Assembly (NCBI GenBank): GCA_037447605.1
Contig: CM074810.1
Coordinates: 2,266,880 to 2,330,879 of the forward strand
From: Zygnema circumcarinatum SAG 698-1b
Lineage: Eukaryota > Plantae > Zygnematophyceae
Reading direction: 5' to 3'
DNA length: 64,000 nucleotides
Shown: in pieces, positions 929 to 53,220 of the stretch
How the letters are laid out: each line of letters opens with the position of its first letter
Numbering within the stretch: the stretch's first letter is position 1
The notes under the pieces: model-generated
Database searches by the model: none
What the model was told of the DNA's origin: nothing
Seen by the model: only the letters and a program-made list of their open reading frames with translations
Translations under genes and position numbers: made by a program

Positions 929-1645
929 TCAGTCCTCGTATTCCATCAGCCTCAGCATGATCACTGCTTTTTCACATCCTCGCCACTTGGCTCGTACATA
1001 CCAATAGATGGCATTGTCATCGTCCTGATTTGTGCCAATCCCCTCGCGGTAACACCTCCCAATATTGTATTGACCGTCCAGATCTCCTCATTCTGCTTTC
1101 ATCGCAAAATAATTCTTAGCTCATTTGACGTTACAACGCCGCAATGCTCGATTCTCATAAACGTATCCCAATTTCACCATGGCTGAGGCATAGTCCTGCT
1201 TCGCTGCTAACTTATACCATGTCATAGCCTCTTTCAAGTCATAGTCAACACCCTCTCCCGATTCATAACACAGTCCGAGGTTAAACTGACCGCATAGACA
1301 TCCTTTCTCCACTGCCATTCTGAAGAGCTTCACAGCTTTAACAAAATTGCGGTCAACTCCTTTCCCCACCTTGTAACGTACTCCTAATGCAGACAGCGCT
1401 TGAGGGGAGTCTTCATACGAAGCCGCTTTGTACCTATGCGCAAAATTTCTGTTATTTGATTCCGCAAAATTGGGGGCAAGATGGTAAGCCGCTGCTTTAT
1501 CCCCCTCGACGCTGCTGTTATGGAACAGAAAACTTTCCTTTCTTATTATGTAAGACCCTTCTCCCGGCTCACATTGTACTGCCCTGAAGTGCTGCTTTCG
1601 CGATTGGGGCTCTGCAGGCTTGAGGAATCTTCTCCGCCTCTTCAT
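929..1645 (-). pseudogene. Locus A, decayed SEL1-like repeat tail (~4 recognisable repeats)
   Basis: ORF 1121-1645 contains ALSALGVRYKVGKGVDRNFVKAVKLFRMA and GQFNLGLCYESGEGVDYDLKEAMTWYKLAAKQ. The same frame continues through two TGA codons into GDLDGQYNIGRCYREGIGTNQDDDNAIYWYVRAKWRG, stopping at 929-931. Confidence 0.75.
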
Positions 1646-2304
1646 GAATTAAGAAGTTGAATGACGGCATGGAAGTTGAAAGCGTCAATTTGTTTAATCA
1701 CTAGCTGCAGCAATGCTTTTTCTTGTTCGTCTGTTTCCGTCCTCAGCGCATCCTCGATCTCTTGTTTAAGGGTTGCCATATTACGATTCATGACAAGCAG
1801 CGAAAAAGCGGTTGCTTCCTGTATGGTAGACAGAAACCGAACCAGTAAAGTTTCATCGACGCATTTACCTGCTTTAATCATAGTTATAATTTCTCTGCAC
1901 TGGATATTCACATCAGCGTTCAGCGCCTTGCCCCGATCTCGATCCGGCCCCGCATTCTCCCACACGCTCGACATTGAATTAGTGAACTCGAGAAGTTCAT
2001 TTAATACAGCAAAGTCGAAGGGGCGAATGATGAGGCCGGGAGGGGAAAGAGGGGAGGGAGCGAGAGAGGCAGAGGGGGAGGCCCTATGCAGAATTGGAAC
2101 TTCATCAGAGCAGACAGAGCCGGACGGCCCTGCATCTCCAACAGCAGAAGGTCTGCAATCCTTCACAATTTTTCGACCGGAAGAGATATTCTGTTGGCCT
2201 ACAGCATGAGGAAAGTTGTCAGCGCCAATCATCTCTAGGCCCTTCTGTTTTTCGTCTGATTCCGCCCTCAGATCCTCCTCGATCTCTTGTTTAAGGGTTG
2301 CCAC
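1642..2304 (-). CDS. Locus A exon 2: low-complexity linker plus a second, divergent 4HB-like copy
   Basis: Acceptor cctcag|GTGGCA at 2305/2304. The segment VLNELLEFTNSMSSVWENAGPDRDRGKALNADVNI resembles the exon-1 motif VNEILTLVDRALTVWENVKSHKEKGKAL. Confidence 0.62.
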   Translation of the reverse strand: MATLKQEIEEDLRAESDEKQKGLEMIGADNFPHAVGQQNISSGRKIVKDCRPSAVGDAGPSGSVCSDEVPILHRASPSASLAPSPLSPPGLIIRPFDFAVLNELLEFTNSMSSVWENAGPDRDRGKALNADVNIQCREIITMIKAGKCVDETLLVRFLSTIQEATAFSLLVMNRNMATLKQEIEDALRTETDEQEKALLQLVIKQIDAFNFHAVIQLLNS

Positions 2305-2737
2305 CTGAGGCGTCAAGGCAAGGAGGGGAATCACAAGTCAGCATTGTCGGAAATGCGTTAGTAAATGGATACAGGCAAAAACTTAGGGTCCAGGGACTCG
2401 GGTTCTGATAAGTTATTCACGCATTCTGAGACAATTTTTTAACTGGGGGACGGTTCAAATCTCTCCTCAATCTGCAGACGACACAGCCTTTATCCCGGCA
2501 GGCAAGTCAATCACAGACAGCGACAGGTGAATCTGCACATGCATAAACTTTCAAAGCCATCCCGGGAACTAACAGAATGCCATCCATTCATCGCTTCTCC
2601 TCCTCCTTCTTCTCCTACTACTTCTTCCAACATTCCGCCGCGACCTGCCCTCCGCCTTCAGCATTCATTCAGAGCATGCATTCTCCTTCCGATGGCCGCA
2701 CCACACAGCGCTACTCCAACCCCGCCTCAGGACACAC
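2305..2737 (-). other. Conserved phase-0 intron of the 4HB cassette (copies at 11915-12216, 13249-13556, 17058-17496, and split at 46597-46646/51620-51887)
   Basis: Donor GAG|GTG(C/T)GT and acceptor region (minus strand) ttccgacaatgctgacttgtgatt...tcag in all five copies. The read-through frame hits stops, and different coding modules start immediately after the acceptor. Confidence 0.75.
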
Positions 2738-51619: not shown

Positions 51620-51887
51620 GAAATGCATAAGGAAATGGATGCACGCAAAAACTCAGGCTCTAGGGACTCGGGGTCTGATATGTCCTTTACGCATTCGAAG
51701 AAAAATTCCTAACTGGGGGACGGTTCAAATCTCTCCTCATTATGTTGACGAAGCAGCCTTTATCCCGGCAGGCAAGTCAATCATAGACAGCGACAGGTGA
51801 ATCTGCACATGCATAAACTTCCAAAGCCATCCCGGAAACAAACAGAATGCCATCACAGCGCTTCTCCAAGTCCGCCCCATAACGCAC

Positions 51888-53220
51888 CTCAGCATTTGGA
51901 TCGGAGTGAGTCCCTAGTAGATCGATTTTCTGACTCGGTGAAGGTGGTTGACCGCCTTTCCCCGCTTCTCTCACCACCAGAAATGTCAGCTGGAAGGTGT
52001 TCAACTCAGTTTGTATTTGTAGAAGTTCTGCTGAAATGCTGTTAGCAAACAGGAGTCGGTACGTAGTGCTTTGATTGCATTTTTCTGCAACAGCGATTGC
52101 CCTCTTCATGATAGACTGAAACTGGCGTATTGCAAGTTTTTTAGTTACCAAGTCACTCCCTTGGTAACTTCTACTCTTCATTGCTTCGTACACGATATTC
52201 ACGGTCTCGCTCAGCACCTTGCCTTTCTTTCGATGCGACTTCACATTCTCCCACACAGCCATCACTTTCTTCACAAGAGACCCGACTTCATTCAAATCAC
52301 CTTGGGTGAGAACCATGGCAAGGCCTAATTCGTCAGCCTTATCCTCAAGTTCCCCCAGGGGACTGCCCTCATTCCATTTTTTACCATCGTTTTTGGGTGC
52401 AGGCATTTGTGCTGATACTGCTGAATCTAGTTGCTCCCCCTTCTTTGCATTCTCCGCTGCCCTCTGCAACCGAGGCACAACATTGCTCTCAAGACTCGGG
52501 CGAGCCGTCCTGTCCCCCTCCACGCACTGCAGCGCCACGTGGACAACTGCCTCTGTGTGCTCGCGCCCCCACGCCCCTCCCCGCGGGTCCAGCCTCGCCA
52601 TGAAGATAGCTGTCGCCTTCTCCAACTCGCGCTTGGGCTGAGCTGCCCCGCAGCCTTCAAGGAGGTCATGGATTTTGTGGATTCTGGGTTCGCCCGTGAG
52701 TAGCTGCAATATGATGAGGCCGAGGGCGTACACGTCGGCAGTGGATGTGACCAATCCCTTTCGTACAAGCTCCGGCGCCATGTACCTGTCAGGAACCAGC
52801 GAAAGGTGACCTTGGGAGATGAGAAGATCCGCCTGTTATAAAGTTGTGTATTCGTTATCACAGCCCACGTAAACATCAACAAACTCGCGGAAGATGCACG
52901 AGCGGGGGCAACGGTTAGCAGAGGATGGCAGGAAGTCGAAATGCTCAAGTGGCAGCAAAGCAGATTGAGACATGACTTACCCGATAGTGCCTTGAAAACA
53001 GTTGTGGGTTTGGATTGTACCCTCAAACATTCGAGCAAGGCCCATGTCCGCCAGTTTGGAGATGAGGTTCCCGTCCAATAGCACGTTCGGCGGCTTCAAG
53101 TCGCGGTGGATGATACCTTTCTTATGCATGAACAGAAGAGCGGACGCCATCTCGTATGATATCCGGACGCGGTCCGCCCAACAAAGGGGGGGGTACTTGT
53201 CAGCAGTGTTGACAATTTGA
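51888..53220 (-). pseudogene. Locus G 5' part: kinase C-lobe fused in frame to a 4HB domain, then the conserved intron
   Basis: IIHRDLKPPNVLLD, LADMG, GTIG|YMAPE (intron 52980-52786, same position as in D). The frame continues without a stop into gccATG(52316) VLTQGDLNEVGSLVKKVMAVWENVKSH; donor at 51888/51887. No N-lobe is visible upstream. Confidence 0.75.

Follow-up and report, generated by a model that had tools for sequence, protein, structure and literature searches.

The window analysed here is a 64-kb stretch of nuclear eukaryotic DNA (G+C content ∼50%) from Zygnema circumcarinatum SAG 698-1b (assembly GCA_037447605.1, contig CM074810.1, positions 2,266,880 to 2,330,879). It holds a tandem cluster of genes in which an exon predicted to encode a four-helix bundle is joined to Sel1 repeats, to protein kinase sequences or to both. 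An earlier note on this DNA had described eight bundle segments, five Sel1 modules and two kinases, all on the minus strand and combined in a different order in each of five gene copies (A, B, C, D and G). When the window's own peptides were compared with the window by tblastn, and Pfam scans were added, these same numbers were recovered (Table 1) and the module orders given for the five copies proved correct. Pairwise E-values among the bundle segments were 1e-10 to 1e-90, too low to be due to chance; Pfam E-values reached down to 1e-198 for Sel1 and ranged from 1e-13 to 1e-15 for the two kinase fragments (Pkinase).

The anatomy of the family is a bundle exon of 115–140 residues, a phase-0 intron, and interchangeable downstream modules that also start in phase 0. 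The downstream module is a long Sel1 solenoid in copies B, C and G, the core of an IRAK/Pelle-type kinase in copy D, and a linker followed by a second bundle (A′) and Sel1 repeats in copy A. In copy G an extra kinase precedes the bundle within one exon; in copy D the kinase, which begins at helix C/strand 4 directly after the shared intron, is followed downstream by a Sel1 relic and a bundle relic. The linker of copy C contains a 93-nt in-frame insertion. Both reading frames are open in copy B alone, and at most this one copy in the window could be functional. Most copies are broken and lie among segmental duplicates and remnants of Copia, Gypsy and LINE (long interspersed nuclear element) transposable elements, as expected from the birth-and-death pattern that the earlier note had proposed.

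Table 1. Modules of the cluster and other features of the window, with positions counted from its first nucleotide
Feature	Position	Strand	Basis or remarks
Bundle A	2768-3181	minus	tblastn
Bundle A′	1645-2031	minus	tblastn; 27–29% identical to other segments
Bundle B	12292-12633	minus	tblastn
Bundle C	13727-14074	minus	tblastn
Bundle D	17527-17940	minus	tblastn
Bundle G	51963-52322	minus	tblastn
Broken bundle relic	15534-15861	minus	frameshift and stop
A′-type bundle fragment	44564-44674	minus	37 codons, 88% identical to A′, intron-less
Sel1 modules, matched segments	944-1432, 8126-11944, 13084-13263, 16069-16212, 45624-46626	minus	tblastn/Pfam
Kinase fragment G	52422-53285	minus	Pfam Pkinase
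Copy A, exon 1: type-1 bundle and helical extension	2738-3181	minus	148 codons, from ATG at 3181 to GAG/GTGTGT
Copy A, shared intron	2305-2737	minus	∼280-nt core, CTGAC, pyrimidine tract, CAG
Copy A, exon 2: linker and A′	1645-2304	minus	A′ (1645-2031) runs into 'ATLKQEIE'
Copy A, Sel1 module	931-1432	minus	frame other than that of A′; in-frame stops at 1123 and 1090
Copy B, exon 1: type-2 bundle and Gly/Pro/Ser linker	12217-12633	minus	139 codons, open
Copy B, shared intron	11915-12216	minus	
Copy B, exon 2: open Sel1 array	8096-11914	minus	contains gap 10439-10448
Copy C, exon 1: type-2 bundle	13557-14074	minus	10-nt deletion at end of helix 4 shifts frame
Copy C, shared intron	13249-13556	minus	
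Copy C, exon 2 relic: single Sel1 repeat	13084-13248	minus	followed by GA-rich low complexity with gap 12888-12897
Copy D, exon 1: type-1 bundle	17497-17940	minus	
Copy D, shared intron	17058-17496	minus	
Copy D, kinase fragment, IRAK/Pelle-like	16216-17057	minus	Pfam Pkinase; in-frame stop 16938-16940; C-lobe exon 16216-16641
Sel1 relic downstream of D kinase	16069-16212	minus	
Copy G, kinase catalytic-core exon	52980-53285	minus	HRD and DMG; no N-lobe found upstream
Copy G, exon: kinase C-lobe, linker, type-2 bundle	51888-52781	minus	one open frame
Copy G, shared intron	51620-51887 (5′ part), 46597-46646 (3′ part)	minus	
Ty3/Gypsy-type retrotransposon in G intron	46647-51619	minus	4973 nt; TG..CA ends, 5-bp GAAAT target duplication
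Copy G, exon 2: Sel1 array	45624-46596	minus	stop at 46203, frame change, further stop
Gap	10439-10448		inside copy B Sel1 exon, 10 N
Gaps	6475, 19155, 21566		in or between transposons
Gaps	12888-12897, 42033		low-complexity intergenic DNA
Gaps	29440, 46932-41, 51438-47		further gaps within the cluster range
Gap	53453-62		just beyond the cluster range, directly upstream of copy G kinase
N-terminal Xaa-Pro-Lys methyltransferase gene	57021-58863	minus	Pfam PF05891
Nup88 gene	61002-62600	plus	Pfam PF10168

The bundles fall into two main types. Those of A and D (type 1) are 86% identical, with a synonymous divergence (dS) of 0.085, and those of B, C and G (type 2) are mutually 54–68% identical; between types, protein identity falls to 39–43%, nucleotide identity over exon 1 to 37–72%, and dS rises to 0.47–0.70. 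Segment A′ is a divergent third form. The ratio of non-synonymous to synonymous divergence (dN/dS) among the bundles was 0.72–1.35; despite these values, the five bundle exons, each of ∼114 codons, are still open at dS up to 0.7, which would argue for some constraint. In addition, a W-E-N closing helix 1 and a G-K in the basic loop that is conserved between helices 1 and 2 are invariant, and a short helix reading 'YRV.FA' is conserved, which suggests a real, constrained domain. The bundles of B and C begin with 'MAFPS', a start that might hint at an N-terminal motif of the MADA or MAEPL type. In A′ and in the fragment at 44.6 kb the bundle is joined without an intron to an 'ATLKQE' segment resembling the start of exon 2; these units may be retroposed spliced copies or an ancestral intron-less form. 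CT-rich tracts reading 'PSLPPSL' recur upstream of the type-1 bundle exons, and the relic at 15534-15861 carries a CT-rich upstream region of its own that resembles those of A and D.

The shared phase-0 intron

In all five copies the bundle exon precedes the same phase-0 intron, which is 302–318 nt long in B, C and G (the transposon in G being left out of the count) and 433–439 nt long in A and D. A core of ∼280 nt is 84–96% identical among the five, both bundle types included; identity rises at the donor, GAG/GTGYGT, and drops ∼20 nt into exon 2. Within these limits a branch-point-like CTGAC is followed by a pyrimidine tract and by CAG as the acceptor. The junctions of A, B, D and G are all in phase 0 and in frame, though the exons differ in length (148 versus 139 codons); a second candidate donor present in B and G only, CTGGTG/GTGAGA, likewise lies in phase 0. 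Within the window the block occurs beside bundle exons only, with constant orientation and position, and it has been conserved about five times as well as the silent sites of the preceding exon. A and D have exon 1 and intron in common and then run into unrelated second exons, a linker with a second bundle in A and a kinase exon in D.

The simplest reading of this pattern would be concerted evolution, or repeated recombination, within a phase-0 intron that serves as the joint for exon shuffling, since a near-identical intron connects divergent bundle exons to differing downstream modules. The shuffled module orders are also explained better by this intron than by random decay. We infer that these orders arose through recombination in the intron together with tandem duplication and transposon insertion, the intron itself having been homogenised or exchanged among copies. 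A functional RNA within the intron was considered and rejected, since RNAalifold found no covariation (one compensatory pair out of 59, with a positive covariation term) and a scan of the whole window with Rfam gave no family. JGI metagenome contigs scanned with the intron pattern gave no match. In B, C and G the frame of exon 1 reads ∼36 codons into the intron, up to a stop at a conserved position. As a separate observation, the read-through tail, '..DGMLFVS.MA.EVYACA.SP.AV.D' plus stop, is hydrophobic and conserved in all copies (12106-12633, 13449-13766 and 51780-52322); it is a candidate for an alternative C-terminus that intron retention might produce.

Predicted fold and relatives of the modules

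One AlphaFold2 model was built for each paralogue type from an alignment of six sequences, all from this window, with mean predicted local distance difference test scores of 85.9 (type 1) and 80.2 (type 2). Both models consist of four long helices, an additional short one being placed between the third and the fourth, and in type 1 a long helical extension continues past helix 4. When the models were compared by Foldseek with 350,542 PDB chains, the top match of both was the executioner domain of human MLKL (6zvo; probability 1.0, template modelling score 0.55–0.66), and the NRG1.1 CC-R and Rx-CC domains (7l7v and 4m70) were within the top 15. The earlier claim that exon 1 encodes an MLKL/RPW8-type bundle thus stood at the level of the predicted fold, but no significant sequence or profile match accompanied it: exon 1 is predicted to be an MLKL/CC-type four-helix bundle, a class membership supported by fold, with homology unproven. 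The closest Pfam matches were below threshold and came from DUF7792 (E = 0.036, in two of the six members) and MLKL_N (E = 0.082, in one of the six). An exhaustive profile search of 1.84 billion protein representatives returned no true relative, its two matches both being spurious repeat proteins; no match was obtained in a word-indexed search with the kinase–bundle open reading frame (ORF) of copy G, in JGI metagenome contigs scanned with the bundle alignment, or when the bundle profile was run with hmmsearch over 242 retrieved proteins.

The C-terminal modules gave strong Pfam scores, bearing out the proposal that they are true Sel1 arrays. Copy B matched Sel1 (PF08238) with E = 9e-198 over 19 stretches, plus 5e-125 over a further 11, and the modules of A and G also exceeded the Pfam gathering score. 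The array of copy B has a regular 36-residue repeat, of which ∼30 are detected as assembled; this regularity and the 94–96% identity of its internal duplications point to rapid repeat turnover. Its matches are thousands of long Sel1 proteins, mainly from bacteria and early-diverging fungi, with 35–48% identity. Among the best 120 relatives of the array found in a search of 5.8 billion proteins, the N-terminal partner, counted from Pfam codes, was a kinase in 22, a caspase in 12, TIR in 7, a trypsin-like protease in 7, nSTAND/RDD in 6 and a GTPase in 4, and match coordinates placed the effector at the N-terminus and the Sel1 array at the C-terminus. A search with the bundle profile showed the bundle studied here to be absent from all 120. 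The earlier note had not recognised the combination as one described in green plants, and it was found neither among these relatives nor in the literature, where searches on Sel1 in streptophyte algae and on bundle–Sel1 fusions turned up nothing relevant. The recurrence of the effector–Sel1 layout in bacteria and early-diverging fungi may merit a survey of its own.

The best PDB matches of the kinase fragments were IRAK4, PBL2, BIK1 and LysM receptor-like kinases. The fragment in D has HCD and DIG motifs and that in G HRD and DMG, and an APE motif is present; neither the GxGxxG glycine loop nor VAIK occurs in the six frames of the window, and both fragments lack the N-lobe. Neither D nor G, therefore, encodes a complete catalytic kinase domain, and D has an in-frame stop as well. 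No homology was seen between the first kinase exon of D and the sequence upstream of the G kinase. As to the claim that the system is free of NB-ARC, the window agreed with it: its six frames held no credible Walker A or GLPL motif, and the ORFs read and scanned no NB-ARC or NACHT domain. Two matches to the Walker A pattern were spurious, one lying in a retrotransposon region and the other in low-complexity sequence with a stop. The absence holds for the window, and a partner gene may lie elsewhere in the genome.

Assembly gaps and surroundings of the cluster

Ten assembly gaps interrupt the window, five of which (6475, 12888, 19155, 21566 and 42033) touch no bundle, Sel1 or kinase reading frame. 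The gap in the Sel1 exon of copy B separates two stretches, 9126-10438 and 10449-11761, that are 100% identical over 1313 nt and offset by 1323 nt, or 441 codons. Since the older duplicates inside this array are only 94–96% identical, the exact one is most likely an artefact of joining two contigs, which would have added 441 codons to the exon: its length is 1282 codons as assembled and ∼841 if the duplicate is collapsed. The frame is kept with either length, because paralogous repeats hold 7 nt where the gap holds 10 N. At the other end of the cluster, a perfect (100%) inverted repeat of 749 nt (53463-54211 versus 54517-55265) begins directly beside gap 53453-62. Pfam gives no match for its ORFs, and the repeat is a palindrome created by the assembly or else a foldback element of very recent origin; with gap and repeat directly upstream, the 5′-end of copy G is unreliable. 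Two further gaps, 46932-41 and 51438-47, are close to the two ends of the retrotransposon that interrupts the intron of copy G. This element retains protease, RNase H and integrase remnants, and no long terminal repeat pair was detectable in it, probably because the gaps cut both ends.

Segmental duplication has left its mark on the flanks of the copies. The upstream flanks of A and D (3905-4094 and 18965-19154) are 98% identical up to gap 19155, and the downstream flanks of A and G (544-703 and 45238-45397) are 91% identical, the latter being followed in G by the A′-type fragment. The best matches of the Gypsy reverse transcriptase, with 60–78% identity, are elements from Tanacetum, Closterium, Haematococcus and metagenomes; together with the IRAK/Pelle-like kinase fragments, they are compatible with a green-lineage genome. 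The window also has long CA and CT microsatellites; very long CA/TG tracts at 36668-37650 and 38400-38830 give rise to spurious ORFs of 150–300 codons. A run of 25 A stands right before a 274-N gap (42008-42306), and could mark a poly(A) tail left by retroposition or the place where the assembly broke. At the far end of the window ordinary housekeeping genes with short exons are found (Table 1).

A candidate sensor–effector family and its alternatives

The explanation that we tentatively favour, while rating it as somewhat short of probable, is that of a lineage-specific tandem family in which a bundle exon is joined via the shared intron to swappable modules, the intact members being sensor–effector fusions. 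In an intact member such as B, the C-terminal Sel1 solenoid would bind a ligand or keep the bundle at the N-terminus inactive; on ligand binding or oligomerisation the bundle, with its conserved basic loop, would be released and might then engage membranes and go on to signal or to permeabilise them. Such a protein would be a sensor–effector fusion with no nucleotide-binding switch, and the fact that long Sel1 arrays elsewhere usually stand behind a caspase, TIR or kinase fits an NB-ARC-free design of this kind. We consider it unlikely that the bolder form of the proposal applies, namely that these are NB-ARC-free sensor–executioner receptors, a killer bundle being wired to diversifying Sel1 or kinase modules and the homogenised phase-0 intron acting as a module-swapping cassette.

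Several observations weigh against the favoured explanation. All copies except B carry stops, frameshifts or truncations; copy B itself has AC as its acceptor dinucleotide where the other four copies have AG; in copy G the bundle is internal rather than N-terminal; and, judging by dN/dS, much of bundle evolution looks unconstrained. The structural evidence has limits of its own. The alignment behind the fold prediction holds only the six sequences of the window, the Foldseek E-values are weak (0.09–0.15), and the four-helix bundle is a common fold, for which weak Foldseek E-values are usual. The Pfam scan of the bundles gave no match to RPW8, HeLo, HELL or Rx_N and no family above threshold, the bundle profile found no PDB chain at E ≤ 10, and no relative of the bundle was found in any collection searched. 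Class membership is therefore a matter of fold, given those E-values and the want of a significant sequence or profile match.

One alternative is an adaptor or scaffold that plays no part in cell death. The bundle would then be a lipid- or protein-binding head and the Sel1 array a generic assembly platform, and the kinase fusions would reflect signalling. Sel1 proteins are commonly adaptors, SEL1L/Hrd3 being an example; the conserved basic loop is compatible with simple lipid binding; and the best Pfam hint is DUF7792, which we take to be the N-terminal domain of plant armadillo-repeat-only proteins. This alternative is rendered rather improbable, though it deserves serious weight, by the top structural neighbours, which are executioner bundles (MLKL, CC-R and CC) and not scaffolds, by the death- or immune-type effectors to which relatives of the Sel1 array are mostly fused, and by a tandem birth-and-death pattern, near-neutral dN/dS and repeat turnover that are atypical of housekeeping scaffolds. 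It is also doubtful that the cluster is a pseudogene graveyard, the dead debris of a once-active family with its orders produced by random rearrangement. The stops and frameshifts in the Sel1 modules of A and G, in C, in the D kinase and in the relic at 15.5 kb, the retrotransposon in the intron of G, the AC acceptor of B and a dN/dS of about 0.8–1.0 can all be read in this way. Set against them are the bundle exons still open with W-E-N and G-K unchanged, a Sel1 frame in B open for at least 841 codons, and junctions that are still in phase; moreover, intact members may exist elsewhere in the genome.

Two further explanations concern how the copies came to be there. If the 'intron', possibly along with the bundle exon, belonged to a transposon or introner-like element that spreads captured gene fragments, a near-identical non-coding block beside divergent exons would be expected in a transposon-saturated region such as this one, and the intron-less A′-type copies do suggest retroposition. 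The block, however, is confined in the window to bundle exons, in constant orientation and position, has proper donor, branch-point, pyrimidine-tract and acceptor signals, is not flanked by terminal repeats or target duplications, and was absent from the metagenome contigs, all of which makes amplification by a mobile element very unlikely. That the multiplicity of copies is an artefact of mis-joined or duplicated contigs might be suspected from the ten gaps in 64 kb, the exact 1313-nt duplicate and the 749-nt inverted repeat, two of which sit at gap edges; but the copies differ by 10–60% in sequence and have differing flanks, defects and transposon insertions, and the only features affected are the number of repeats in B and the 5′-end of G, so we rate this as improbable in the extreme.

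On the favoured explanation of a tandem family built from swappable modules, several known systems offer partial parallels. MLKL, which in animals and plants consists of a four-helix bundle/HeLo domain, a brace and a C-terminal pseudokinase, provides the best structural match of the predicted bundle, including the short helix between helices 3 and 4, and the type-1 copies share with it a long helical extension past helix 4, as D and G do a kinase-fold partner. There is no significant sequence match to MLKL, however, and the kinase, whose motifs are HRD or HCD and D(M/I)G, belongs to the IRAK/Pelle type and is not an MLKL-type pseudokinase; the order is kinase then bundle in G, and although it is bundle then kinase in D, that kinase is truncated and broken. 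The main partner here, a Sel1 solenoid, is absent from MLKLs. RPW8/HR proteins and the CC-R and CC domains of NLRs (NRG1, ADR1, Rx and ZAR1) belong by Foldseek to the same predicted bundle class, and the RPW8/HR genes, as here, lie in tandem clusters free of NB-ARC, have C-terminal repeats and evolve by birth and death (PMC6684095). They differ in that no Pfam match to RPW8 or Rx_N and no NB-ARC partner were found in the window, and in that the repeats here are 36-residue Sel1 units instead of RPW8/HR ones. With fungal HeLo/HELL proteins and those fungal NLRs whose internal repeats are highly conserved the family may share the coupling of a helical killer domain to a recognition module, as well as repeat arrays of high internal identity with rapid turnover by unequal crossover; however, no HeLo/HELL profile match, NACHT, NB-ARC or amyloid motif was found, and the repeats belong to Sel1, not to ANK, WD or TPR.

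The same layout is seen in the effector–Sel1 proteins of bacteria and early-diverging fungi, with an N-terminal effector, a long C-terminal Sel1 array and no NTPase. Kinase–Sel1 proteins have been noted in Glomeromycotina and Mortierellomycotina (PMC8778642), and D and G combine kinase and Sel1 too. The difference is that a four-helix bundle occupies the effector slot here, and Sel1 identity is limited to 35–48%. The exon shuffling has a counterpart in Ectocarpus, where the LRR and TPR exons of a candidate receptor family are reportedly subject to intron-mediated recombination: there, too, phase-compatible (0-0) introns permit module swaps in a clustered, fast-evolving family. In the Zygnema cluster, by contrast, it is one near-identical intron that recurs among paralogues in whose exons the silent sites have diverged five times as far, and we know of no report of such an intron beside diverged exons in an exon-shuffling receptor family.

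The cluster is real, unusual and lineage-specific, a variation on the MLKL/RPW8/CC executioner theme that is equipped with a noteworthy exon-shuffling intron and has a putative sensor–effector function. The bundle may represent a new structural subfamily, having no sequence relatives among the protein representatives searched, and the shared intron, which links differing modules in phase, offers a natural case of intron-mediated exon shuffling or concerted evolution that is uncommonly clear-cut. Should intact members be expressed and the bundle prove cytotoxic, an MLKL/CC-type executioner would here be connected directly to a repeat sensor without any nucleotide-binding switch, a design that would stand between RPW8/HR proteins, MLKL and NLRs and would bear on the origin of plant-type CC and CC-R domains and on the assembly of NLRs.

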